DNA of 64,000 nucleotides from Macrostomum hystrix (Eukaryota; Animalia; Platyhelminthes): the NCBI GenBank assembly GCA_950097015.1, contig CATNEN010000025.1, positions 5,766,001 to 5,830,000 on the forward strand, given 5' to 3'. The stretch's first letter is position 1. Each line of letters starts with the position of its first letter. The notes below the pieces were generated by a model, which saw only the letters and a list, made by a program, of their open reading frames with translations, was not told the DNA's origin and ran no database searches. The position numbers and the translations under genes were made by a program. Shown piece after piece: positions 3,162 to 64,000 of this stretch.

Positions 3162-3385
3162 TTGGGACACTCCCAGGACCCCCGCAGTACCAATCCGGGG
3201 GACACTCCCAGGACCCCGCAGTACCAATCCGGGGGACACTCCCAGGACCCCCGCAGTACCAATCCGGGGGACACTCCCAGGACCCCCGCAGTACCAATCC
3301 GGGGGACACTCCCAGGACCCCGCACTACCAATCCGGGGGACACTCCCAGGACCCCGCACTACCAATCCGGGGGACACTCCCAGGA
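3162..3385. repeat. 34-35-bp minisatellite (GGGGGACACTCCCAGGACCCCCGCAGTACCAATCC)
   Basis: About 6 tandem units; explains ORFs 3100-3420, 3108-3398, 3120-3395 and 3146-3343. Confidence 0.95.
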
Positions 3386-3810
3386 AGCGGAGTAACACTC
3401 CGGAGTTACACTACCTGTAGGCGGAAGCTTAAAAGAAACTCGATGCATAAAAACTTTTACGAAGTTTAAGAAGAGACAAAAGCTTCTGCTTTCACTTGAC
3501 TCCCCCTTTCTGACAAGAAAGCTTGACAAGAAAACAAAAACAGGCCAGAAAAAAGTCAGTGTGTCGAATTCCAATTGGATGGAAAAGTGGCTTCTCAAAG
3601 TCCCACAAGTGTGACAACGTAATGAGATCAGATTTTCGACGATCAGAACTTTAAGCCATGTCAACTGAAAACAGATTACAAATATTAGTCTGATAATGTA
3701 GACGCACGTAAAGGTAAGATATACTTACGAAGTCAAAGAAATCGGGTCGGAATCCAAGTACTCATACCAAGCAAACTTGCATCTGAGCAGGCTCAGGAGT
3801 GAGAGAAGTG
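3385..3810. repeat. Dispersed repeat, copy 1; inverted relative to the copy at 8688-9150
   Basis: The reverse complement matches 8772-9150 (e.g. CATGGCTTAAAGTTCTGAT, GTTGTCACACTTGTGGGACTTTGAGAA). Spurious ORFs 3359-3664(-) and 8883-9155(+) are mutually similar. Confidence 0.85.
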
Positions 3811-45439: not shown

Positions 45440-48400
45440 TCAAGCTCTGCTAGCCGGGTACAGAAGGAACATCTCGCAGGCGGCGTTGCGATACTGCTGA
45501 TCGTCTGACAGCAGGCCCACTGGCTGCACAAACGGATGACTAACTGGAAAGTGGCGCTGCAGGGTGCAGAAACAGTTGAGCAGTAGCAGCTGGTGCTGGC
45601 AGGCTAGTGCTGTGTACCGGTGCAGATCCAATGGCGCGGATTCAAATGACACTCCGGCAGCTGTGGGCACCTCCAGCCAGCGACTTTCCACCTCCGGCTT
45701 CTCTAAGGATATCTGAAGCACGTAAGGGCACAGGTAGGAATGACGCAACCGACTGCTGCTGCTGCCGCCACCGAGGCCCAGCTCGCCTGCGGCTCCGCCA
45801 ACTTCGCCTGGGCCATCGTGCCGATGATGATGCGGCTGTAACAAGGCTAGGCGATCCTGGTACTCCTGAGAATAGTCATTCGGATTGCATTTTCTAGATG
45901 AGCCTAGTCACTGCGAGTGCCATCCCATACTTCAGGGACCAATCACTGTAGCTTCCATCCCATACCTCAGGGAGCAGTCACTGTAGCTTCCATCCCATAC
46001 CTCAGGGAGCAGTCACTGTAGCTTCCATCCCATACCTCAGGGAGCAGTCACTGTAGCTTCCATCCCATACCTGAGGGAGCAGTCACTGTAGCTTCCATCC
46101 CATACCTGAGGGAGCAGTCACTGTAGCTTCCATCCCATACCTCAGGGAGCAGTCACTGTAGCTTCCATCCCATACCTCAGGGAGCAGTCACTGTAGCTTC
46201 CATCCCATACCTCAGGGAGCAGTCACTGTAGCTTCCATCCCATACCTCAGGGAGCAGTCACTGTAGCTTCCATCCCATACCTCAGGGAGCAGTCACTGTA
46301 GCTTCCATCCCATACCTCAGGGAGCAGTCACTGTAGCTTCCATCCCATACCTCAGGGAGCAGTCACTGTAGCTTCCAACCCATACTTCAGGGAGCAGTCA
46401 CTGTAGCTTCCATCCCATACCTCAGGGGAGAAGACACAGCAGCTCTATCACAATTTTTATTAACCTGCAATCTCTGCAGCCGCATTAATTTTCGCTGATT
46501 GGTTCCGCCCCGCATAGACAATGGTCGCTGATTTGCTTGCTGCAGCAGCTGCTGCTGCTGCATCAGAAGCCTCTGTCGCTGCTGTTGTGCCAGCATTTTA
46601 GCCAGAGTACGCTCCCGTAATTTGCTAATCCAAACAGCGTAGGCGGAACCGGCGCCGCTCAGACAGACCAGCCTACGGCACGGCTGCGAATCGTCGCCCT
46701 CGTCGTCATGCACCGGCAGCAGACAGGCTGTCAGATAGCGACTAGGAGGTGGCGAATGTGGAGACCAAGTCTGAGCCAGTTGGCACCAGGTGAGACTGGA
46801 CAGCACAGCCGATTGGCTAGCCTCTGGTCCAACAGAACAGGTGAGAAGCCACACCTGGGCGCAGAACTGATTTGGCCTGACCTCACCGCCGCACAGAACA
46901 ACCCGACGATCGTCCAATGCCTCCATGGCGTGATTGTGACGCGGCATTGGATACCGTCGAGAATCGCCATCAGCAATGTCATTGTCATCAACCTGTTCGT
47001 CAACAGTTTCATTGTAAAGTAGGCTATGTGGAGCGGAGCTGCATACACCATTGGCCAGGTTAATTAGCCAGATACGATTGGACAGAACAGACTGAGAGGT
47101 GAGTCCGCCCGTGATTAACAAGTATTTACGCATAAAAATGCAGGCTGCGTGGCTAGTCAGGGGTTCTATAACCGGCTGAGACGGCTGACGTTCAAAATTT
47201 AATTCAAGCGAGGATGCGGAACTAGATAAGACGCTGTCGCTTAGCAACAATAATTGCCAACGATGCGTCCGAGTGTCCAATACATGAACATCGCCAACTA
47301 CAGAGGCTCGAGGACTAGTGTGAAACAGGTAGCCGCCGAAAAGAACCAGCTGAGTTCCGGCGTAACAGGTGAGGCTGGCGTGCGATCGAGGCTCCGGGAA
47401 CTGGCCGGATGACATCACCCGCTCCCAGCGACATTCCGCCGAGGACGAGCCAATGGATAAGCGCCAAAGATCATTTAGTGGCACCTGATTGGGTTCGGAC
47501 ACTCCTCCGAATAGATACACATAATCGCCGCATTTGGCAACAGCGGCTGAGAGGCGAAGGCTAGAGAATGGGCTGGGCTGGCCCATCACGTGACGTATGC
47601 GACTCCAGCATAGGCCGTGACGGCCATCTAGGGCGGCCTGCGGGTTCGGGGATTTGTTTGCCTTGTTCGATTTCTGTATGTAATCTCTTTTATCGTAATC
47701 TTCCAGATGCTCCTGTAACTCGTAAGCCTTGTAAATAGCCTAATTAGCCTGGTAGTATCTTCAATAATATTTTTCTCAGTTTCTCTAACTCTCGAAACCT
47801 GTCGTTTCTTCTAGCTGCCTCTCCAACCCAGTTGTTACTTATGGCAGCCTCTCCAACCCAGTTGTTTCTTATGGCAGCCTCTCCAACCCAGTTGTTTCTT
47901 ATGGCAGCCTCTCCAACCCAGTTGTTTCTTATGGCAGCCTCTCCAACCCAGTTGTTTCTTCTGGCAGCCACTCTAACCCAGTTGTTTCTTCTGGCAGCCT
48001 CTCCAACCCAGTTGTTTCTTCTGGCAGCCTCTCCAACCCAGTTGTTTCTTCTAGCTGCCTCTCCAACCCTGTTGTTTCTTCTGGCAGCCTCTCCAACCCA
48101 GTTGTTTCTTCTGGCAGCCTCTCCAACCCAGTTGTTTCTTCTAGCAGCCTCTCCAACCCAGTTGTTTCTTCTGGCAGCCTCTCCAACCCAGTTGTTTCTT
48201 CTGGCTGCCTCTCCAACCCTGTTGTTTCTTCTAGCTGCCTCTCCAACCCTGTTGTTTCTTCTAGCTGCCTCTCCAACCCTGTTGTTTCTTCTAGCTGCCT
48301 CTCCAACCCTGTTGTTTCTTCTAGCTGCCTCTCCAACCCTGTTGTCTCTTCTAGCTGCCTCTCCAACCCTGTTGTCTCTTCTAGCTGCCTCTCCAACCCT

Positions 48401-49121
48401 GTTGTTTCTTATAGCTGCCTCTCCAACCCAGTTGTTTCTTCTAGCTGCCTCTCCAACCCAGTTGTTTCTTCTGGCTGCCTCTCCAACCCAGTTGTTTCTT
48501 CTGGCTGCCTCTCCAACCCAGTTGTTTCTTCTAGCTGCCTCTGCAACCCTGTTGTTTTCTTCTGGTAGTCTCTGCAACCCTGTGGTTTTCTTCCGTCAGT
48601 CTCTGCAACCCTGAGGTTTTCTTCTGGTAGTCTCTGCAACCCTGTGGTTTTCTTCTGGTAGTCTCTGCAACCCTGTGGTTTTCTTCCGTCAGTCTCTGCA
48701 ACCCTGAGGTTTTCTTCTGGCAGTCTCTGCAACCCTGAGGTTTTCTTCTGGCAGTCTCTGCAACCCTGAGGTTTTCTTCTGGTAGTCTCTGCAACCCTGT
48801 GGTTTTCTTCTGACAGCCTTTGCAACCATGTGGTTTCGTCTTGCAGTCAATCTAACCCCACTGTTTCTTTTCTTGTAGTCTTAGCTACTTCTAGTCACAA
48901 GTTCTCTTTTCCTGTACTTTTGACGGTAGAACAGTTCAGAAAGAAATATATAGAAAGAAATATATTATTAGCTGCCTCACCCTAAAGTGAGACTTTCGCC
49001 TCTCAATAAGACAGTCAGCTAGCTGGCACAGTCGCCTATTGACCAATCGCAATCGGCGCAGATCGCTCAAATGGAGCAGATTGTCCAGCACCCGCTCCAG
49101 CACCTCAGCTGGTAGCTGGTC
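45440..49121 (-). CDS. FBXO42: F-box/Kelch-repeat protein, FBXO42-like
   Basis: Exons 49121-48981 (F-box DQLPAEVLERVL), 47712-46465 (Kelch: YVYLFGG...NDLWRL, PEPRSHASL..LVLFGGY, LLITGG, PRHNHAM) and 45865-45440; all junctions phase 0. No ATG inside the first exon. Confidence 0.88.
45925..46425. repeat. 35-bp intronic minisatellite
   Basis: CAGGGAGCAGTCACTGTAGCTTCCATCCCATACCT units, about 14 copies. Confidence 0.96.
47810..48830. repeat. Two adjoining related ~30-bp intronic minisatellites
   Basis: GCAGCCTCTCCAACCCAGTTGTTTCTTCT(A/G) grading into GTAGTCTCTGCAACCCTG(T/A)GGTTTTCTTCT. Confidence 0.95.
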
Positions 49122-51153: not shown

Positions 51154-53677
51154 TTAATTATGAATCGGTCGGTCCAATGCGTCGCCACGCAAGCCGAACT
51201 TCTTCTCGAAGCAATACAGAAGATTGTTGGTGCGCTGGTACAACACCCTGGTCTTCTCTATCACCTGTTGATAAGGCGAGATGTGCTGCGAGCCCATGGT
51301 TACTAGGCCGTGCTTGGAGTCAATCTTGGCGTCTAGGCGAGCATTTCTGATTAGATCGACCAGCCACTTCTCAGCATCCTCCGGGTTCATGTTGAGCTTC
51401 TGAGCCAGCATGTCAATACTGATGACTTGGTGAATGCGGCAGAATGTTTCGAAGATTAAATGACGCGCCGACTCCAGGAATTGGTCCAGCCGGTGGCACA
51501 AGAAGAAGTCGTTGACGATGACGTCTGTGCAGGCCCGCAGCTTGTCCTGGGCGCCGTCGAAATCGAACTGGATGTACAGACACTCCAGGAACTCGGTGAT
51601 TGGGTCGCGGTAAGTGTACGACTCCTGAGTGGCGATGGCGGAGTTTGATAAAATCAATTAGTTGTCAGGCATAAAAATATACACATAACATGACAGTTTT
51701 TGTACGTTCTTAAGGATTATTGGACACAAGCTGAAGGATCACTGGGGTCATTGTGGCATATACTGAAGGATTGAAGAGGGTAGATTCTGAAGGATCATTG
51801 GGGTACATTCTAAAGGATCATTGGGCAGATTCTGAAGAATCATTGGGACAGATTCTGAAGGATCATTGGGCAGATTCTGAAAGATCATTGGGACAGATTC
51901 TGAAGAATCATTGGGACAGATTCTGAAGAATCATTGGGGTGGATTCTGAAGAATCATTGGGGTGGATTCTGACGAATCATTGGGGCAGATTCTGAAGGAT
52001 CATTGAGGCACATTCTGAAGAATCATTGGGGTGGATTCTGAAGAATCATTGGGATAGATACCAAAGGATGATAGGGATATATTCTGAATGATCATGGGGA
52101 TATATTTTAAAGAATCATGGGAATATATTCTGAAGATTCATTGTGGTAGATGCTGGAGGATCATGGTGATACTTATTGATGGATCATTTGCTAGATGCTG
52201 AAGCAAAGAGGCAAGGGCTTCCAAAGCAGTCACATTCTGACCTGCTGAATGACGCGAATGAGGTCGGAGAAGTTGCGCTTCTTGCGGCTGCGGTTCATGA
52301 TGACGCAAACTGCCAGATAGCGCAGCAGATGCGGCGCGAGAGTCTGGATGGCGTTCAGATAGTCTTTGTCCAGGAACATGTCAATCAGCAGCTCGGTGCC
52401 ATCCTTGTCGCCCTCCTTGTAGTTGAAGAAGACGAATAAGGACCAGTGCAGTAGCCAGGTCCGCTGTTGCAGCAGCTGCAGCGGTATCACCCGGTCGCTC
52501 TTCATCATCTCTTTTAGTTCGTCCAGGCAGGCGAGCGCATCCTGAGAAAAAATAATATTCATAAAATCTGTCCCATGCGCAAGATAAGGAGGCTCGGTGG
52601 CAGAGCGGTTAACGTGTTCGCATCTCTCACCAAGGTTCATGAGCTCGATTCCGCGGCGAGGCCGCATTCATTTGGGGCGCAGCCGCGGAGAGAAGGCTTG
52701 CGGGCGTGTCGTGCAATTTACGCCCTTGAGGGCCAACCTCCAAGGCACTGTGAGAGTGTACACTGCCTGACAATGAGAAAGTCAGGGCAGATGTACACAC
52801 CTGTATGAGTGTATGCCTGCGTATGGTATGTGTGCGTGTGTGCTCAGGAGTCAGCGAAATGGGCAGAATTGCCTTCTCGCTGGCAGCGGGTCTAGTGTCA
52901 CTAAATGATGTGCCATCGTCCACAGCCCTGCTGCAATTATTGTGTCTTTATTTGGTTACAAGCACATTATTTGGTGACAGTAGACCCGCAGCCAGCGAGA
53001 AGCCATTCTGTTCATCTGACTCCTGAGAACAAAGGCACACACACACAAGGATAGCGTACGCAAGCACCGAATGATGGCCCTGATGGCCTTCTATACGCGA
53101 CAGCGCACCGAATGAATCCAGCTTAGGCATCTTGGTGCTTGGAGACACCTGCTCTGCCACCCGCACTAATCAATTTCTACTGTTAGTAGAATAAAAATGA
53201 AAATGAAACCTTGAAATTGTCGTTGAGAATCTCGCAGGCCAGCAGGCCCCACATGGCGGACGAGACGCGCGGATCGCTAGCCGGAGCCAACATTCGAAAC
53301 ACTGATAGGAATCCCTTGGCCATGTTGTAATTGCCGATGCTGTACTTGAGACGGGACAGTTCGTACATGTCGTCTAGCATCTCGGGATTGTAGCCGAACT
53401 GGGCGGTCAGGGTGTCGATGAGCTTGGTGTGATCCTTCTCGGAGCGCAGCTTGTTCATATTCTCGGCGTTGAATATGCGCAGTAGGACTTCTTCCTTGTC
53501 GCGAAAGTCGGCGAGCTCTTCAAGGACAGCGGCGCGCTTCTTGTGGTATTCTTCGGGAACTTCTGCTTCCTCGTCCAGTCCGTGCAAGACCAGGTAGGTC
53601 TCAATGATGTAATCGACCATATTGGTTTTTTCCAACAGGTCCAATTTAGCTCGCAGAATGTCATCGCGTGGATAGAT
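51154..53677 (-). CDS. EIF3E: Translation initiation factor eIF3 subunit E (Int6), lacking its first ~30 codons in this window
   Basis: Exons 53677-53210 ([13 protein letters not shown]), 52541-52242 ([31 protein letters not shown]) and 51624-51154 ([36 protein letters not shown]); all phase 0. Confidence 0.97.
51735..52160. repeat. Degenerate 22-23-bp intronic minisatellite
   Basis: GGACAGATTCTGAAG(G/A)ATCATTG-like units. Confidence 0.85.
52591..52930 (+). mobile_element. SINE family B, full-length copy
   Basis: tRNA-like head GGCTCGGTGGCAGAGCGGTTAACG...GAGCTCGATTCCGCGG; body shared with 10678-11005. Confidence 0.88.
52960..53163 (-). mobile_element. SINE family B, older degenerate copy in inverted orientation
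   Basis: The reverse complement contains GGGTGGCAGAGCAGG (head) and CTCAGGAGTCAGATGAACAGAATGGCTTCTCGCTGGCTGCGGGTCTACTGTCACCAAAT (tail). Confidence 0.75.
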
Positions 53678-55111
53678 CTGATTTGGTTGTTTCGAGTATT
53701 AGGGAAGTTAAGTATTTCTTTTTTGGATAAAACTTTTCATTTGACCAATCGCTTTCTATAAAAAAGCATTGAAACAACCATAACTAGACAGACGATTCAC
53801 TGTAATACAAGACTGATATTTTATTTACTAAAAATATGCATTTTGGTATGATTAATTACATGAATAATATTATATAAACTGGCAACCTCTTGACAAACTG
53901 ACACTGAAACTGACAAACTAAGAACAAACAGTCTTTTTATTCTTAACTTTCCACCATTTATGTACAAAAAATACATAATGTTTACATTTTATTGAGGAAT
54001 CACTTCCAGACCCCTTCTACAGTAAACAACCAACCACTCTGATCATCCTACAACTTCTACAAAAACATTTTCAATGAAACCTAGTTAAAGGACAAAATTA
54101 AAACATAGAAAATAGTATGGCTTAAGTAAAATTTAGGCAAATATATTTACATTTGAATGTTTTTAGTTCTATCTTTTCAACCTAAAGGTACAAAAAATCT
54201 TACTGTTGTAGGCTTTCTTCTTTATACTAAAAAATAAATTCTGATGGTCAGAGTGCATTAAAAATTTCACTTTTACATTGAATTCCTCTATCTTTTTTGC
54301 TTAGTCAAGTATAATAAACCAGAAAATAAAACTAATTATAGGTTTTAACAATTTATTATAAACATTCATTAATCTCATTAATATTTAGAAGCAAATTATT
54401 AAACAATAGCATTTTATATTCCTTCATTTAGCAATATGAGAGCCCTATTACTTTTTGTTGCATAATTGTTTAATATCAACAAATTGTCATTACACATCAG
54501 CGTTTAAGACCTCATTTAAGAGCAATAAATATACCTTATAATATTTGGACATAAGCTATTTTTTGTCTTTGGCCAGCTCTGTCATAGAAAAGTGAGTTTG
54601 ATTTAGTCAGCACTTGGCATTTACCTTAGACTGTAGTAAAGAAATGAAATTGATTTAGTCAATCACAAATTAAAACCTTTCCATGACTTGAATAAAGACA
54701 CTGAATTTTATTTAGTCATCATGAGTATATGAATCATATATTAGTATACTGATGCTAAATATATAGTTATACAGTCTTTTCACTAAGACTAATATATATG
54801 AAGGCTTGTCAGAGCTATTGAGCTTTGGTAGTTTTGAATAGCTACAAAACAAAATTTAATGGAAGGTAGTTTTTTATACTTATAAATACCATCAAGCACA
54901 ATTATAAATTGTTATAATAAGGCTACTAGAAAGTTTTCCTTTTAAATTTAAATATAAGTATACATAACAAAAATATGTTTAGCAAAAAATATGTTTGTGC
55001 TATTGACCAGTTTATAATTTTAAATGTTTAAAAAGGCAGTGGCTAGAGATTTAGTACCAGACCCCAATATTAAACAGCTAGAGATCTGGTATTTTTTAAC
55101 CTTAGTAGATA

Positions 55112-55183
55112 AGTCTTTAGCTCAGTCTATAGAAAATGGGACTCCTAATCCCAAGGTTGTGGGTTTGAGCCCTATTTCATGGC
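55112..55183 (+). pseudogene. Degenerate tRNA-Lys(CUU)-like sequence (pseudogene or SINE head)
   Basis: TAGCTCAGTC..TAGA..ATGGGACTCCTAATCCCAAGGTTGTGGGTTTGAGCCC resembles eukaryotic tRNA-Lys-CTT, but has an altered anticodon (CCT), TTTGA in the T-loop and a poor acceptor stem. Confidence 0.6.
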
Positions 55184-56555
55184 AAACTTAGCAAAAAATC
55201 TGACACGATAATATAAACTTCATTAAATTGGGATTACTTTAATTTAAAACCAAGTCAAAGCAATGAAACACTAACTAAAGTTAGTTCCAAAAGTTGCAAA
55301 GTAGTTTTATTTTGCTGATATGTATATCCCGCCTGGATAGCCGATCCAGTTGTTGTCTGGCCGTCGTCCGCATTGGTCCGCGTTTGGTGGTCGATTCCAG
55401 ACAAATGCAGCTTTTTGTCCAGTATTCATCCAGTTTAAGCTGCCGGACAAAGTAGCAGGCCAGTTTCCGGATCAGAGCCGGACAAAGTGGTGATTTTTTT
55501 ACTTAATTGGTCCAGTTTAGTCCAGAATTATATCCGCTTGTTTACCCGGACAAAAACCTGGTGAAGCGTCGGATGACTTTACGGATGACTAGCCGGATGA
55601 ATTGTCACTGTCGTCCGGAAAGTCATCCGCATTTTAATCCGGGCTGTTGCCCGCCTAACAACCGGACGAAGAGCGCATATGTTTCCGGGTGATAGTGGAG
55701 CACGTGGAATTGAATAGTGGAAAATAGCACCTTTCTCCTACTTGTACTCGTATGCCCTCAGTTTGTAACACATGTTCCAGAAACAGCAGCACAACGTGTT
55801 CTATTTCTTATGCTCCAAGTTCTACAGAAAAATATACTTCTCCGTATGACATTTCCCACGTTCTGATTTTGATGGGAGACTTCGATGTTGTTTACTGCCT
55901 TCGCATCTTTTGCATGTGTGCAACACATTAGATAGTACACTATGTTAGATAGGGATCATAGAGGTCTTGGAAACAGCGGGTATTGTTGGACAAAATTGGT
56001 CTCGTCCGAGTTGTTACTGAAATGCAGAAATGCAGAAACATGTCGTCCATTCTATACGTGGATAGATGAATAGGTCACACAGCAGATAGTGCTACAGTGA
56101 ATATGCGCATCTAGACATCATAAACCAACCCAATCTCTTTTAGTACTGCACGACTCGCAAACTGCATGGACAATTCAGATTTACCGCCGCGGTTACAGCG
56201 GAGGCAGTACACGCGAGAGTACATGCAGCAGCGTGCGTTGGCCAATTCAAATAGTCGACAAGACGGTTCGCGATCACCTCTGCGTCCAACCGCAGGAACT
56301 TCTGCAGATGTCGACTCCGGCGAAGTCCAGTCCGGCGGCGCAGGCACCAGTGGGACTGCTGCAGTCGTCGCAGCTGCAAGCGGATCCGCCTCTACATCTA
56401 CAGTATCTCGATCTCGAGATGAGCAGTCTGTATACCTGCCTATAGACAATCCAGAGTCCGACGACGGTGGCGCACAGGCCGATGGCCGCAATGGGGAGCT
56501 CTGACAGCACTTCGGACGGGGATTCTTCCTCTAGTGGTGAGTCCCAGTCAGAGAG

Positions 56556-58620
56556 TTGGCTTATCGTGGATTGTGGATCCGTCCCAATGGCTCATGTTTA
56601 AAACTTTTGCGTTACCTGCACGTTGCACTCACACTGTCCACCGAACACATGCGCACTACGCTCACCACACACAATATATTCCTCCCAGGTTCGCAGTCTG
56701 ATGACGGCCAGAGCACAGACTCTGACAACGACGAGGACGTCCCGGGGTTTCCAGGAGTCAATTGGCACGACGCTCTGCCCGTTTCGCTCGGAGAGGCGAT
56801 TTGTGAGGTCAGCTCCTGCGCGAGGGACCTGAACCTGACAGTTAGCGGGACGACAAGGCTGCTTTCACTACTGCACAGGCTAGTACCCGACAACCGCCTT
56901 CCTCAGCACGGACGAACATTGCGTAAATCTTTGAAGAAGAGGGGAACAATCTCGGGGTCGTCAACATGTTACACTGTCTGCAACGACTGTAATCTACATT
57001 CAGAGCAGCGCTGCGATCCAGGAAACTCTAATTGTGCGCACTGTACGTTGGAAAATGTGGCCAACTTCTGGTTATTCGACATACCTGCGCAGATCCGAAC
57101 ATTCGTTGAATCTCGCGGTCTTCTACAGAGCGTAACATTTCCGATTGAACGGCTTGCACTGGACGAAGAGAAGCTGCACTTTGCTAACAGCGAACTGTAC
57201 AAGTCGTTTCTCGAGAACATCGAACCCGAGACTCGGAGCGACCTTACATACACCATCTGTGCAGACGGATTTCCTCTTTTCAACACTAGCAATGTCGAGG
57301 TGTGCCCCGTCTATCTGAGTATTAACGAAGTGCACGAGCGGCTGAAGCTCCGATTCGTGATGAAGTGTGGCGTGTGGGCCGGCAAGAAAAAGGTCCATGC
57401 CGCCGCCTTTCTGCCAATCGTCGTAAATGCACTGAATACTCTGCGCTTCGATGGTGTACAGTATATCGACAGCCTCGGGGTTCAGCGTCGATTGCATCTG
57501 CATCCGCTAATGGCGCTGTTCGACGCTCCAGCGAGAGCGGACGCTCTGTGCATGAAGCGTTTCTTGGCTATCTACGGATGCGAGAAGTGCTACATCCGGA
57601 CATCATTGCATCCATCAGGCCATGGACGAGTCTACGGCGTTCCTCGCACTGTTCAGCGTCACACTGTCAGGCTTCTCAAGGACATCAGACACATGCGCGG
57701 CCACGAATACGCAATGTGGTTGTTGGCGTTCGCGCCTTTCGTCCTTGATGACTTCCTGCCAGAGGAACACTACTGGCACATTTTAATCCTCTCCACTTGC
57801 ATCTTCTGGATGTCCTTAGAAGGTGCGCCGCGTGCCGAATTGCGCCACGTTGAAATCGGGCTGAGACACTTTCACGCGAACTTGTCGCGCCTTTATTCGC
57901 TGCGATTTGTCATACAACGCCCATCAAGTCTGCTGCCACATGCTGCCGTATGCCATACTGGCAGGTCCTCTGAACCGTCAATCCGCCGGGCTGTTTGAAT
58001 CGATGCATACCAGACTGCGTCGCCAGATTCACGGGTCCCGCCGCACGGATGTGGAAATTGTCGGAGCCGTTGAGCGCGAGCTGGCGGTCATGCAGGCTGA
58101 GGAGCTTCTCCGCGACAACGACCAGCAGCCACGCGCGCGGCACAGAACGACATGCATGCGCGCGGCGTCTGACATTCTACTACGGCGTCCTAACAACATG
58201 GCCCACGGCTGGCGTTCGGCGTCTCTCCCATCAGGGTTGTATTTCGAGGAGTATCTACCGGAGATTGAGACGCGGGCGTCATCTGCCTTTGTAGCCATTG
58301 CCGGATGCCAGCCGACGAGCTTTCAGTTCGGCCGCGTTCTAGCAATCGAGTGCGACAACGATGAGGTGTATGTCAACCTTCACATCCTACCCGTACAGGA
58401 CGCTGTCGTGGACCCACTGGAGGCCTTGTGTGCCGTACATGCCAACTCGGAGAACCGAGGTGCCAGATTTGCGCACATCCGAGGCCTCTTAGTCAATCCA
58501 TTCGGTCCGTTAACACATGAGCGCACCGTTCGAGTTCACGCCACTGCCATCGTTGGGTCGTGCGTCGTTTCGGACACAAAAATATGCGTTATGCCACACC
58601 CGCAGATCGGCTTCCAGTAG
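56556..58620 (+). pseudogene. EnSpm/CMC transposase with an internal in-frame deletion and a frameshift at ~57907
   Basis: C..C..C..C zinc region, ICADGFPLF...PVYLSINE...GVWAGKKK...FL, FDAPAR...YGCEKC, RGHEYAMWLL, then the second frame SYNAHQV.CHM...GPLN..SA..FE. A likely acidic 5' exon at ~56480-56537 splices (GTGAGT...CCCAG) to 56689; ORF 56166-56504 may be its N-terminus. Confidence 0.88.
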
Positions 58621-59253
58621 CTTATTATTAAGTCGTATTAATTAGCTGTCGCTTCTGTTTAATCATCACCGCATCAATAGTATAAGTATAATATCAATGG
58701 AAATGAAAAAAGCGGTCCATGAAAGTAGTGTAAAATTTTCATTTCAAGCACATAATTCCCTTTATAATATTGTGGCGACTGTCGCTTTTTTTGCATGTCG
58801 GACGATTTTGTTTCATCGATGATTCTTGTGTCGCGCTCTCAACTCTTTAGCTAATTTAGAGGCAAATTTGGAATTTGTTTCCTCTCAGCTTGTGATCCCC
58901 CAATACTCGAGTATATAATTGAAGACGTCAGCTGCACTGAAATTGTTCTACTAATCTCATTATCATAATAAATATTTCGTTTCGCAAACATTACACATGA
59001 GGCAGTATAATTTCATGATCACTTAAATTATTATTGATACTGCACGAATGTTGCAGTACTATTTCATACCTTACCGGTTTCCATATTACTGAATGTTTGG
59101 TTTACTTACGTATGTGTATAACTGATTAATTAGAAATACAGTTGTATTTGCCGCTGCACTGTAACTATGTATACGTTTTTCCTCTTTTCTGCAGCCCTCT
59201 TGTACATGCACTAACGGGTTGCAAACGGTTGTTCAAGTAATTGCTTAGCACGT

Positions 59254-59994
59254 ATGAGTACAAAGGGTTCCACCGCCTTACACTGCAGCTACATGTCCCG
59301 GCGCACGGGTCAATTATCCGGGACTCCAGACTGGTCCTTGATTCTGGACGGACTTATCGGCGATGGGGTTGATGACCTACTAGGAGATTCCGTAGATTCG
59401 GAGGTCGAGTCGGACGACACCCACACTACGCTAGGCTCACCCGCCGCCCAGGTAGATTCGGATGTCGACTCGGACGACACCCACACTACGCTAGGCTCAC
59501 CCGCCGCCCAGGTAGATTCGGATGTCGATTCGGACGACACCCTCACTACGCTAGGCTCACCGGTCGCCCATGTCCAGCAGTTGGACAGTCAGGCCTGGGA
59601 CTCGTCTCCACAAGCCGTGGAGTCCGAAGATGCAGTTGCGCAGGAGATCCAGGAATTAGTCCTGTCGCCCTCAGAGCTCCGCCGTCCGACGCCAGTCGCT
59701 AGCAGTACGCAAGTTGACGCAAGTACGCAAGTACGCAAGCAGTACGCTGCTGACTACAATAGGCTTCCGGACGAGCCACCGCCGACGTTCGACTCACGCC
59801 GGCGGTATGACAGGCAGCGCCTTCCTGCGCAAACTTGCCCAGACTGTGAAGCCTGGTACGCCAACCTGCCCGCCGAAGTTCGCGACCAGCGCCTGCAGCG
59901 CCATGGGCGCCATCGGCATCGTCCGATTATCCAGGCGCCAAACTTTTTTCCATCGACATGCCCCCCAGTCCGCCACCACTTCCGGTGGAGCTGA
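59254..59994 (+). CDS. Transposon-borne protein with acidic repeats and a C-terminal Sae2/CtIP-like domain
   Basis: RRRYDRQRLPAQTCPDCEAWYANLPAEVRDQRLQRHGRHRHRPIIQAPNFFPST aligns by eye to CtIP [60 protein letters not shown] (CxxC and RHR motifs). The true 5' end may be spliced (CTGCAG acceptor near 59193). Confidence 0.82.
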   Translation: MSTKGSTALHCSYMSRRTGQLSGTPDWSLILDGLIGDGVDDLLGDSVDSEVESDDTHTTLGSPAAQVDSDVDSDDTHTTLGSPAAQVDSDVDSDDTLTTLGSPVAHVQQLDSQAWDSSPQAVESEDAVAQEIQELVLSPSELRRPTPVASSTQVDASTQVRKQYAADYNRLPDEPPPTFDSRRRYDRQRLPAQTCPDCEAWYANLPAEVRDQRLQRHGRHRHRPIIQAPNFFPSTCPPVRHHFRWS

Positions 59995-60498
59995 TGAGAG
60001 TAGGCAGGCGCCGTATGCGGCCCCTTCGCGGCCTTCCTCCCTATGATGCGCCGAAACCTAAGTCTGCAAAGAAGGATTGAATTGCTTTGGTTTCCCTACC
60101 ATGGTCGCGCCATGGGGACTAGTTGAAATAGGGATGGGGATAGGGATAGGATAGGGATAGGGATAGAAATATTTCCCCACATATGGGGACAGGTGAAATC
60201 GTTTTTTATATTAGAAGAACTGCTGCGCAACTCTTGTTCATATGCTGTTTCATCCTTCCACACTTTTTCTACTTGTGTTGACGATTTCTGTTTAAACTTT
60301 TTAGTTGAATTTGTTTGTGAACAAATACAACAAATCAGTTACAGTGTAGCTATGCGGGTTGCTTGCTGAAGTGCAATGGTGTCGAGGTTGCTGAAGTGCA
60401 AACACATATAAAAGGACCGGCGCTTTTTTGGCTTTGTGATATCCGTCAGTCTTGTTTGTTATTTCATTCCGTCCCGCTGCTAACTCCTTACGAACCCG

Positions 60499-62544
60499 TT
60501 GTACATAACCAAGTACTCAGTCACCTATAGTGCTCGAGGATCAGAGACGATGACTCCTGTACAGATCTCGCGGAAATGCCAACCTCATGTCATATCTTTT
60601 CCAGCGTGCACGAGAACTGCCATCATGGGCCGCACGTGTCGCGACGCTTCGGAGAAAGAAAGTAAAGAGGCAAAAGAAACGCATGCAACAATAAAGAAGC
60701 CGTCTGGTGTTTCTAAGAAAATAGGAGTACCATCCAGTGTCGCCAAGGTGTCGGCTCGGGCTACGGCAACCGATTCGGGTGCCAACGTCCCGACTGGAGC
60801 CGCCGCCGCCGCCGCCGCAGCTGTGGCAGATGCGGATTTAAATCCGCCAGGTGGATTAAGCGTCGCTAATCCGACTGCCATCGATAGCACTGCTCATTCG
60901 GAAGAAGTTCCGATTCCGCGGAATCGACTCGCCGCTGAAGAAGATAACGAACCTGAAATGGTGCCGTTTAAAGCCGAAGCCAAGGCCCGGTTTTTTGTAT
61001 TTCAGTATACCGACTTCCACCAGCGAACAGAGGTAGTGTCAACAGACTCCAGCCTGATGTCCACCAGTGCCATCATTTCGCGTCGGTCGGATGTGCAGCT
61101 GCCTCTAAACACCGGCGCCGTAGTCGCTGTCGTGACAGCTCGGAGCAAGCGTAGCACGGCCCGGCGCTATCTGGGCACACTAATAAAGGGCCCATTCGAC
61201 AAGAAAAGCGAGGCTGCTGGTGCTGCCAGCTTGACTAACGTCCACACGGCACCCGCCGAGCTGCCGCGGTCCTGCAGCTCCTGTCGCGGTCTCGTGCTTG
61301 AGCTCCAAAGGGAGAAGGCCTTGACCGAATCCCTGCGTAAGTTTCTGATTAAGTTACTCATGGGGCCATCAGATCGATCTGCATTGTCGTATTCTGCATG
61401 CATCTAGATTCATCAACTGACGCATTCCGTCCACATATATAAGCAGAAGCAAACCATAAGTTAGCTGATTGACCTGTCAATCCTTCCAATTCAAATACAT
61501 ACGCAGGTGGCGAACTTAAGCTCCTCCGTACTTCTGAGACCAACCTGCTGGCACAGAACCGCACGCTCCTGCACAAGACGAGTGTGCAGGCCAAAATGGA
61601 GCGGAAGCTGGTCATGCAGGTCGAGCAGGCCGAAGCGCGCAACAATGGCCTACTGCGTAATGTCGACACCGCCAACGCGCTGCTCGCCAGGGCGTCAAAT
61701 TGCCTTTTGCCGGCCGCAAGTGCAACCACTTCAGGTGCTGCTGCAGCTGCATCACATGTGCGCCCCGATGATACCTTTGGTGACGCTGTTTCTAGCGCGC
61801 ACTCCTCCGCGGACGAGTCTGCTGACGATGACGCATTTGGCGACCAGGCAACCTTCTCCGCTGATCGCAACCTGTCTGTTGCCGAAACGCGCGCGTTAAT
61901 CCGCGCATGTGACGCGGAGCAAGGGACCGCCACTAGCTCTGCTACCGGCGGACTGGTCGCCCTTTCCGACGGCCAGAAGTTTTTTTCTGTTCCTTTGGCG
62001 ACTCCGGTCTGAACTTGAAGACCGACACAAAGAATATAAGAAGGCGATGGAAGATCAGCAGGCGGTCGACCTAGACGCAGTTGCCATGCGGCGCTTTACG
62101 CGCTTGGCGCTACTGCGTGCTGTCTTTAGGGCTGTCTTTACGTCGCAAGAATTGGCGAACTCATCCCTGTCAGGCCGAAGAATTGCTGGGTACGTTTCGG
62201 CGCCGGCGAACCCGGCCAAAGTTGCTGTCGCGAGGCAGTGGCTGCAGAACGCCGAGGTGCCAATTTACCGCAATGAACTGCATCGCGCATTCACTCGGTG
62301 CGGCGAGACGGCGAGATTGCAGCTGGGACTGCCGAAGCGCAGCCGACCCAAGCGTTCGACTGCGGCCCGCACACCTGGCCAGTCATCTCGCTCGAAGGCT
62401 ACCACCTCTGCAGAACATGTTCTGCGCATAATTATCGAACAGACTGAGGAGTCTCATAACACTGGGACGCAGTTTCTCAACGCAGGCGACTTGGACGGCA
62501 ACAGTCGTCCAAGTGACTTGTTGCTGGAGATGCTGAACGATTGA
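60499..62544 (+). CDS. Second EnSpm gene: coiled-coil plus C-terminal BEN-domain protein (TnpA-like)
   Basis: ORF 60499-61336 splices (C|GTAAGT ... CGCAG|GT, phase 1) to 61507, giving the continuous coiled coil LTESLR-GELKLLRT. A 1-nt shift in the T-run at ~61980 leads into LLRAVFRAVFTSQELANSSLSG...NPAKVAVARQWL...HRAFTRCGE, a BEN-like pattern. Confidence 0.72.
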
Positions 62545-62654
62545 TGATCAGGGACGAACAGGGTCGTGAATTGCTGGTGATAGAGCTGACTGACAGGGAC
62601 AGATCACAGACATGGACAGATCTCGAGATAGACGGAGAGAGGACTGGGGGAAAG

Positions 62655-62750
62655 GGATTGTGGCCATTTGAGGATATTGGAGCAGGGTGGTTCTGGCCAT
62701 TTGAGGATATTGGAGCAGGGTGGTTCTGGCCATTTGAGGATTGGGGTAAG
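62655..62750. repeat. 33-bp tandem repeat (about 2.5 copies) inside the EnSpm element
   Basis: TTGGAGCAGGGTGGTTCTGGCCATTTGAGGATA units. Confidence 0.85.
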
Positions 62751-64000
62751 GGGATTGTGGCCAGTGTGACTTTATGCACCAACTTTTTGTATTTCGTGAT
62801 TTGAGAGGTGATTGTGGTCAGTGTGACTTTTTGCACCTACTATATTAGCATTTTGTGAGATGTGTCGAGTCGATGATGTGATGATGATGAATGTTCGTAA
62901 AATACAAAGTGTTCTTGCCAGTTTAAGCCCCTGCTTTGGGTGTTCGTGCAGCATAACTACAAGCAGCTTCAGCTGTGCCACTTGGAAACAAAAAATGTTA
63001 CTGGAAACTAGTTGTGAATATGTCTTTGTAAAGCTTCTTTTTTATTTAAAACATTTCAACACAAATCTCGTTGGATTTTGCGTCTGCATTTAAAGGCCTC
63101 GCCATGAATTAAAGTCAGCGTGACTTTCATCAGTGTACTAAGTATGTACTTCCGCTTTCCATCCGGATGTTCTCCCGGATTTTCGTCCGGATCACGTGAA
63201 TCTCTCTTTGCCCAGTTTTCGTCAGCTTTTTGATCCGGGTAGTCATCCGGTTTATGCGTCTGATGCAGTCGTTTTGTCTGGAAAATAACCCGCCATGTGG
63301 TCTGGTTAATTCTGGATGAAATTCCGGACAAGTTTTCGGATGACAGTCTGGATTTCAACCGGACCAATCGGTTTTTTTCCAGACATTTTGGTCCGATTTT
63401 AAACTTTTCCTCTAGTTTTTTCTGGACGAATCAAATGGGAAAAATACATTACAACCCCGGATGACACCCAGACGTGTATACAGACAAACTGCCGGACCAC
63501 TTATCCAGGCGGGATAAAATTTTGTATGCAAACCACAGAACTTGCCTTCTGCTTATTCTCTGAAAAGTCTCTGAAACTGAAAAACCTGCTTTTATTTCAA
63601 TCCATGTATAGGTATAGTAAATAAATTCTGTCAGATCTTTAACCATTCCATGTTGGAGTCTAGCACTGTTTGATTTTTTAGCCATTTAACATTGGAGTCT
63701 GATGCTGGATCTCTAGCCATTGTCACTGCTATATTATCAATAACCTTAAATTTTAGGCAGTTGTTAGACAAATAGCCATTTGATTATTTACCCAGTTAGT
63801 GATTTTATTGTTAATTTTAGATTTCATACCAAATGTATACATTAGAAAGAAGGCACTAAACTATGCATGTCAGATGAGATCTTCCCTTTAAGCCAAATTT
63901 TAAGCCAAGTTTATATCTAACTAATGTCTGTTTGATTTGTAGTTTTATCCAACTAAAAAGTAACCTAAGTTCCTTTGAAGCGTGAAGTTGTAGCAACTCA

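Follow-up and report, generated by a model that had tools for sequence, protein, structure and literature searches.

The locus and its surroundings

The DNA analysed here, a stretch of 64,000 nucleotides from Macrostomum hystrix referred to below as the window, contains a unit of about 8.7 kb (55037-63722) in which three genes of the + strand lie between inverted repeats. The middle gene is an open reading frame (ORF) of 246 codons, whose last part resembles the C-terminal tail of CtIP/Sae2 proteins. The main features of the unit are the following:

55037-55080, + strand: left arm (starts CAGTGGCTAGAG) of the terminal inverted repeat, 80% complementary over its 44 nt to 63679-63722
55325-55776, no strand assigned: left subterminal region, with a second inverted-repeat arm at 55325-55354 (TATCCCGCCTGGATA) and motif copies
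56482-58620, + strand: transposase-like gene, from its ORFs, with an intron and a frame break read from the sequence
59254-59994, + strand: 246-aa ORF with an acidic repeat N-terminus and a CtIP-type tail, from the ORF list and homology searches
60499-62544, + strand: third gene (earlier labelled BEN), from its ORFs and sequence
63161-63516, no strand assigned: right subterminal region, with the partner arm at 63487-63516 and motif copies
63679-63722, - strand: right arm of the terminal inverted repeat, with an extra CAGTG 5 nt outside, to about 63728

The flanks of the unit are AT-rich, reading ..AAAAAGG and CTATATT.. immediately next to it, and its body is GC-richer. The unit is located about 1.4 kb upstream of the 5' end of the host eIF3e gene (51154-53644, - strand), which is divided into several exons and encodes the Pfam domains eIF3_N, PCI, and EIF3E_C. 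Elsewhere in the window, an FBXO42-like ORF is 68% identical to a protein of the relative Macrostomum lignano. Since the two FBXO42 proteins are just 68% identical, the intergenic DNA of the window would not be expected to align with that of M. lignano.

Two tandem arrays are also found in the window. The first, at 3170-3400, holds about six copies of a unit of roughly 35 nt (GGGGGACACTCCCAGGACCCC(C)GCAGTACCAATCC). The second, at 47744-48614, is a long and highly regular repeat with several open frames on each strand (..ARRNNWVGEA.. among others), and is located between the FBXO42-like ORF and a RIC3-like ORF.

The ends of the unit

The arms of the terminal inverted repeat, 55037-55080 and 63679-63722, match each other over 44 nt at 80% identity (blastn E 0.001), and their ends read CAGTG...CACTG. 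The second inverted-repeat pair, 55325-55354 and 63487-63516, is collinear with the first. In addition, one family of short motifs, CCGGA[CT] / TCCAGA, is concentrated near both ends, with 11 copies in 55396-55776 and 16 in 63161-63492, while the rest of the window has about 0.5 copies in every 500 nt. Another pair (CACTAACT, at about 55270 and 63801) spans just 8 nt and is not placed symmetrically with the 44-nt repeat.

The sequence-only reading of this locus had described an element bounded both by terminal inverted repeats and by a target-site duplication (TSD). The inverted repeats are upheld by the 44-nt pair and the second pair collinear with it, but the duplication is not, as no consistent case emerged when pairs of ends were scanned systematically for a TSD of 3-9 nt. 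The copy may be too old for its TSD to be still visible. Searches of the 64-kb window by tblastn and blastn returned no second copy of the element. The mobility that can be proposed for the unit rests on this end structure.

Several smaller features lie within the unit. Just inside the left inverted repeat there is a tRNA-like fragment (55118-55175, + strand) that scores 20.9 bits against the Rfam tRNA model, whose gathering score is 29, and that gave no match with ARAGORN; its origin may be a tRNA-derived SINE that has decayed, or it may belong to the element end. An (ATAGGG)n microsatellite occupies 60128-60166, downstream of the middle gene, and about four copies of a 33-nt tandem repeat are found at 62645-62774, downstream of the third gene.

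The middle gene and its acidic N-terminal part

The ORF of the middle gene runs on the + strand from an ATG at 59254 to a stop at 59992-59994, through 246 codons and with no interruption, between the transposase-like gene and the third gene. Both its integrity as an ORF and its position had been reported in the sequence-only reading, and both are borne out by the ORF list and the sequence. Upstream of the ATG there is a pyrimidine tract followed by a splice-acceptor-like AG (59193-59194) and, shortly 3' of it, an in-frame TAA (59209-59211). Because of this upstream in-frame stop, the ORF can be regarded as a stand-alone cistron that has no 5' extension within its exon.

The protein is divided into two very different parts, of which the internal features are these:

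59392-59570, + strand: three 60-nt tandem repeats encoding a 20-aa acidic repeat (..VDSDVDSDDTHTTLGSPAAQ..), with 94% matches
59836-59916, + strand: CxxC (C195, C198) to RHR (219-221), the 'C-rich-H' core of the CtIP tail, placed by alignments
59944-59951, + strand: frame break, at a T6 run and CC directly after ..APNFF, from translations and alignments
59952-60080, + strand: out-of-frame continuation IDMPPS...GRRRMRPLRGL...KKD and stop, from translation and alignments

Residues 1-160 are acidic, with 30 D/E against 5 K/R, and hold seven S/T-P and three S/T-Q sites. No CtIP_N or coiled-coil match was obtained for the ORF with Pfam. The earlier picture of an acidic N-terminus with three 20-aa repeats and with both kinds of site, lacking the coiled coil of CtIP, is thus correct.

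Homology of the tail to CtIP/Sae2

The CtIP-type tail was recognized by several comparisons. Residues 160-246 were searched with phmmer against a library of 1.84 billion representative proteins, where just seven matches were obtained at E up to 0.001. Among them are the following:

P0001: E 4.6e-14, 57% identity, Macrostomum lignano Mlig004387
P0002: E 2.4e-5, a metagenome protein of 315 aa whose N-terminus is a coiled coil and which matches Pfam SAE2 at 5e-9
P0006 and P0007: E about 1e-3, vertebrate CtIP, both with Pfam SAE2 and P0007 also with CtIP_N

Aligned by hhalign to a profile of four CtIP tails from which the query had been left out, the tail reaches a probability of 99.2% (E 6e-20), and by BLASTP it matches fish CtIP at E 2e-11, with 42% identity over 60 residues. 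Its identity to the M. lignano protein is 53-57%. The signature motifs, CPDC at residues 195-198 and RHR at 219-221 (within 'HGRHRHR'), both fall in invariant columns of the alignment. On these alignments, the tail of the 246-aa ORF is a genuine CtIP/Sae2-type C-terminal domain of the CxxC...RHR kind, as the sequence-only reading had claimed.

The Pfam SAE2 model (PF08573), which that reading had put forward as a check, does not reach its threshold on the C-terminal piece (11.6 bits, E 0.6, against a cut-off of 19.8). The M. lignano proteins P0001 and P0008 likewise score under the cut-off, at 14.3 and 13.4 bits. Since flatworm host proteins fall below it too, the low score can be attributed to divergence of the lineage and not to missing homology.

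Two other matches to the ORF were rejected. Pfam zf-ChsH2, which is found at the CxxC (E 0.0016-0.011, below cut-off), reflects a generic zinc-ribbon resemblance, and calcineurin, obtained from the solved structures at E 0.0075 with two domains of 8-9 bits, is a chance match. No CtIP-tail structure was matched in a sequence search of the solved structures, and neither a word-based homologue search with the tail nor a metagenome scan with the CtIP-tail alignment gave a match. Neither the 246-aa ORF nor an ORF next to it was on record in an exact look-up in public assemblies. A collection of 15 billion proteins contains none closer to the element gene than the host gene is, and so offers no evidence of expression.

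A host CtIP gene separate from the element is known from M. lignano. This protein, P0008, has 481 aa, is encoded in three exons, and carries an N-terminal coiled coil together with the same tail, which is contained in the single last exon. Its gene occurs at two loci, with neighbours that encode an acetyl-CoA synthetase and EMP24. A separate host gene, which the sequence-only reading had proposed to locate, thus exists in this relative, at an ordinary syntenic locus.

Two positions of the tail had been given particular weight in the sequence-only reading. The residue before RHR is His in the element, where it was thought to replace Cys as a metal ligand. This argument is weak, since the column holds Cys in vertebrates and the M. 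lignano host protein, Gly in P0002, and His in the element and in P0004, and so contains no fixed ligand. The second position is the equivalent of human T847, a target of cyclin-dependent kinase (CDK). The element reads Ala-Pro there, and P0002 and the vertebrates read Thr-Pro, so the CDK site is absent as described. However, M. lignano host CtIP also has Ala-Pro, which is accordingly not peculiar to the element. Judging by this comparison, the missing Thr-Pro is a flatworm trait and no uncoupling specific to the element, as had been suggested.

P0004 is itself a 92-aa CtIP-tail ORF, at 518-802 of a 910-nt Logan contig (L003, from SRR31628425), and shares with the element the His-Gly that precedes K/RHR. 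In another frame, the contig holds an ORF at 6-842 with a weak FHA match (Pfam 18.6 bits, just below cut-off). It may represent an FHA-CtIP fusion gene of another organism.

A frame break within the tail

The in-frame homology to CtIP ends at a T6 run (59944-59949) followed by CC, where the in-frame reading and a continuing one meet. After ..QAPNFF, the ORF reads PSTCPPVRHHFRWS ('FPSTCPP...'). The frame that starts at 59952 reads instead IDMPPSPPPLPVELMRVGRRRMRPLRGL...KKD, in full IDMPPSPPPLPVELMRVGRRRMRPLRGLPPYDAPKPKSAKKD*, and aligns without gaps over 37 residues to M. lignano P0008 445-481 (IEMPPTPEPAPTQCMKFGKRRHRPLRML...), with E 1e-9; against the CtIP-tail profile it gives E 6e-6. This alignment begins exactly where the in-frame one ends. 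Read from the translations, a one-base frame break at the T6 run shortens the 246-aa ORF, and its last 14 residues are out-of-frame sequence. Because homology continues in the 59952 frame, the ancestral gene would have encoded about 275 aa (roughly 828 nt), of which this copy is a shortened form.

An intron behind the change of frame is ruled out, as the homology is contiguous across the break, and a programmed -1 frameshift at the T6 run was set aside, as the heptamer is not canonical.

The frame break also changes the interpretation of the FPST at the end of the ORF, which had been taken as a conserved T859 context. By BLASTP, this FPST aligns to the vertebrate FPST only when a gap of four residues is opened. 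In the alignments, its true equivalent is the MPPS of the other frame, and the in-frame FPST is an artefact of the break.

The extent of conservation can be read from the alignments at the 18 invariant columns of the four-tail profile. Twelve are retained in frame: four Arg (two of which flank the His of RHR), two Leu, both Cys of CxxC, two Glu, the His of RHR, and the Phe of NFF. In the shifted frame, three more are retained (a Pro, and the Arg and Pro of RRxRP) and one holds Ser for Thr. The remaining two (VV) are deleted, belonging to a gap of four residues ahead of the first Arg.

Compared with the CtIP/Ctp1/Com1/Sae2 family (PF08573; nearest member Mlig004387, PAA54340 / PAA88737), the element gene thus shares the CxxC...RHR core and the ..APNFF.. 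peptide and, in its shifted frame only, the MPPS and RRRxRPL stretches. It differs from the family in the absence of the N-terminal tetramerisation coiled coil and of the long internal region, in the His for Cys before RHR, and in the four missing residues before the first Arg. Unlike the other members, it is a small, stand-alone gene inside a transposon-like unit, and this copy of it is frame-broken.

The transposase-like gene and the third gene

The transposase-like gene has a probable ATG at 56482, a GT..AG intron at 56537-56688, and a long exon that extends to about 57909. Amid a continuous motif, a frame break occurs at 57906-57913, after which the next frame leads to a stop at 58618-58620. 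The label 'transposase' rests on a motif resemblance, in that a DG.PLF-type motif comes after a Cys-rich stretch, as in TNP2-like transposases. None of the pieces of its ORFs has a Pfam match at E up to 5-10, and a word search of 5.8 billion proteins with the 480-aa ORF gave no match of 0.55-1.75 times its length. A piece of the gene was likewise without a match in the metagenome scan and in a sequence search of the PDB. A single-sequence AF2 model of the core has a pLDDT of 36, which makes it unusable and too poor for a fold search. The transposase identity assigned in the sequence-only reading therefore gains no Pfam, homologue, or PDB match.

A 112-aa ORF with its own ATG (56166-56504, + strand) lies upstream of the probable transposase start and overlaps it in another frame. 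It may represent an upstream ORF, or else belong to the transposase as one more frame-broken N-terminal part.

The third gene has a TATA-like box near 60407, a probable ATG at 60550, and an exon to 61336, followed by a GT..AG intron (61337-61506) whose splicing joins a continuous coiled coil. Its frame is broken between a T7 run (61980-61986) and a stop at 62010-62012, beyond which the C-terminal part follows. The BEN assignment made earlier for this gene found no backing, as no Pfam family, BEN (PF10523) included, matches at E up to 5-10, and the sequence search of solved structures in the PDB produced chance matches only, with no BEN among them. The single-sequence AF2 model of the BEN-like ORF has a pLDDT of 44, and is also unusable and too poor for a fold search.

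All three genes of the unit are therefore interrupted, and the breaks (57906-57913, 59944-59951, and 61980-62012) fall at T runs, namely T3, T6, and T7. Real decay may account for them, or one-base errors of homopolymer length in the assembly. Because every gene is frame-broken, the copy at 55037-63722 would be either a decayed one or one with such errors.

Relationship to EnSpm/CACTA elements

The unit has several traits in common with EnSpm/CACTA (CMC) elements. It is several kb long, contains several intron-bearing genes on the same strand, has short terminal inverted repeats, and its subterminal regions are packed with short motifs in both orientations (11 + 16 copies). On the other hand, its ends are CAGTG...CACTG instead of CACTA/CACTG...TAGTG, no 2-3-bp TSD was found at the unit, and none of its genes matches Pfam Transposase_21, DUF4218, or KDZ at E up to 10. 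The assignment to this superfamily in the sequence-only reading thus lacks a CACTA terminus, a TSD, and a TNP2/Transposase_21 match. As far as these comparisons go, EnSpm/CACTA and BEN are resemblances of the unit and not established memberships.

A full-text literature search that paired CtIP or Sae2 with CACTA, EnSpm, transposons, or gene capture returned no report of such a cargo, in agreement with the earlier remark that no described CtIP-carrying transposon is known. A DNA transposon with an accessory gene of host origin is of a known kind, and it is the CtIP-tail cargo that is unreported in this search. Plant Helitrons carry RPA-like genes and phage Mu carries Gam, so that mobile elements with a repair or end-handling factor of their own are known. 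The protein of the flatworm unit would be similar to these in being derived from, or mimicking, a host factor for break processing, and would differ from them in representing the MRN-activating tail of CtIP.

A proposed capture and role of the CtIP tail

Taken together, the unit at 55037-63722 is probably a copy of a three-gene, DNA-transposon-like element bounded by terminal inverted repeats, whose middle gene stems from the tail of CtIP/Sae2. What this gene would do can be approached from the known function of the tail. The CxxC and RHR motifs form the 'C-rich-H' domain, which is common to most eukaryotic CtIPs and has been modelled beside the Mre11-Rad50 interface (bioRxiv 10.1101/2023.08.05.552090). 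Both this domain and the loop that follows it contact Mre11/Rad50 (bioRxiv 10.1101/2023.08.05.552090; bioRxiv 10.1101/2023.03.25.534200). Activation of MRN requires the CtIP tail, where the loop after RHR binds Rad50 (PMC7261161; bioRxiv 10.1101/2023.08.05.552090; bioRxiv 10.1101/2023.03.25.534200). In Schizosaccharomyces pombe, a 15-aa peptide from the C-terminus of Ctp1 stimulates Mre11 in vitro without CDK phosphorylation (bioRxiv 10.1101/2023.08.05.552090; bioRxiv 10.1101/2023.03.25.534200); the equivalent of T847 is Ile in this yeast, and activation is CDK-independent there (bioRxiv 10.1101/2023.08.05.552090).

In the proposed mechanism, the middle gene would be a stand-alone descendant of the Mre11-Rad50-activating tail, made up of the core and the peptide downstream of it. 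The tail would have been captured from host CtIP and joined to a new N-terminus of acidic, Ser/Thr-rich repeats in place of the tetramerisation coiled coil. Intact copies of the element would then produce a protein that docks on Rad50/Mre11 at excision breaks and either promotes endonucleolytic clipping or hairpin processing or, by competition with host CtIP, blocks it. Repair of the donor site would thereby be biased, and promoted resection would favour copying of the element back from the sister chromatid.

Human CtIP 790-897 by itself fails to support single-strand annealing in cells, where the N-terminal tetramerisation domain is required (PMC7261161). Because the human tail alone fails in this way, a tail-only protein may be inactive or inhibitory. 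The frame break of this copy is located inside the stretch that matches the Rad50-contacting peptide (in human CtIP the loop T847-T859, in Ctp1 the final 15-17 residues). The 59254-59994 copy accordingly lacks an intact Rad50-binding peptide 3' of RHR, and the part after ..APNFF can be read in another frame only.

That intact members of the family encode a working, CDK-independent mini-CtIP which controls the clipping and repair of their own excision breaks can be put forward only tentatively. Under such a role, and by analogy with the SDT/SXT motifs of MDC1 and Ctp1, the acidic Ser-rich repeats may act as docking sites that depend on phosphorylation, with Nbs1 as a possible partner.

The tail may alternatively be a passenger without function, the last exon of host CtIP taken up by the element in the way that Pack-MULE and CACTA elements acquire pieces of genes, with an ORF that is open by recency or luck. 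This explanation is rather unlikely. In its favour, the homology is limited to the tail, which sits in a single last exon of the M. lignano gene, the copy is frame-broken inside the key peptide, and the 15-billion protein collection offers no evidence of expression. Against it, the gene has an ATG, an N-terminal region, and a stop of its own, with an upstream in-frame stop after a splice-acceptor-like site, and it retains the motif residues at just 53-57% identity to the nearest known host tail.

A further alternative makes the product a decoy, a dominant-negative protein that occupies the CtIP site of Rad50, blocks resection, and thereby diverts repair at the excision site into end joining. 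The replacement of the N-terminal coiled coil by acidic repeats is consistent with it, as is the failure of the human CtIP tail alone to support single-strand annealing in cells (PMC7261161), and inhibitors are known that compete with CtIP for its site on Rad50 (bioRxiv 10.1101/2023.03.25.534200). Against these points, the 15-aa tail peptide of S. pombe activates Mre11 and does not inhibit it (bioRxiv 10.1101/2023.08.05.552090; bioRxiv 10.1101/2023.03.25.534200), and purely inhibitory action appears improbable.

Finally, it is very unlikely that the unit is non-mobile, its middle gene being a tail-only paralogue of host CtIP beside unrelated genes and its inverted repeat a coincidence: a missing TSD, the lack of a recognisable transposase domain, and the lack of a second copy within the 64-kb window would fit this explanation, but not the 44-nt inverted repeat (E 0.001) with its second collinear pair and one motif family enriched at both subterminal regions, nor the frame breaks in all three genes, which are unusual for host genes, nor a long transposase-like ORF with no matching protein of 0.55-1.75 times the query length.

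Significance

The reading preferred here, of a mobile element with a captured CtIP tail, concerns a step on which such elements depend. Cut-and-paste transposons rely on the host for the repair of the breaks that they leave, and whether they gain copies is decided by which route, end joining or homologous repair, is taken at the emptied site. The copy at 55037-63722 shows where the genes of this element break. If the reading is true, a transposon family that carries a CtIP tail would be a natural mobile element bringing its own factor for the choice of repair pathway. It would also offer a naturally minimised CtIP, a tail without the tetramerisation domain, in which the capacity of the tail itself could be tested.
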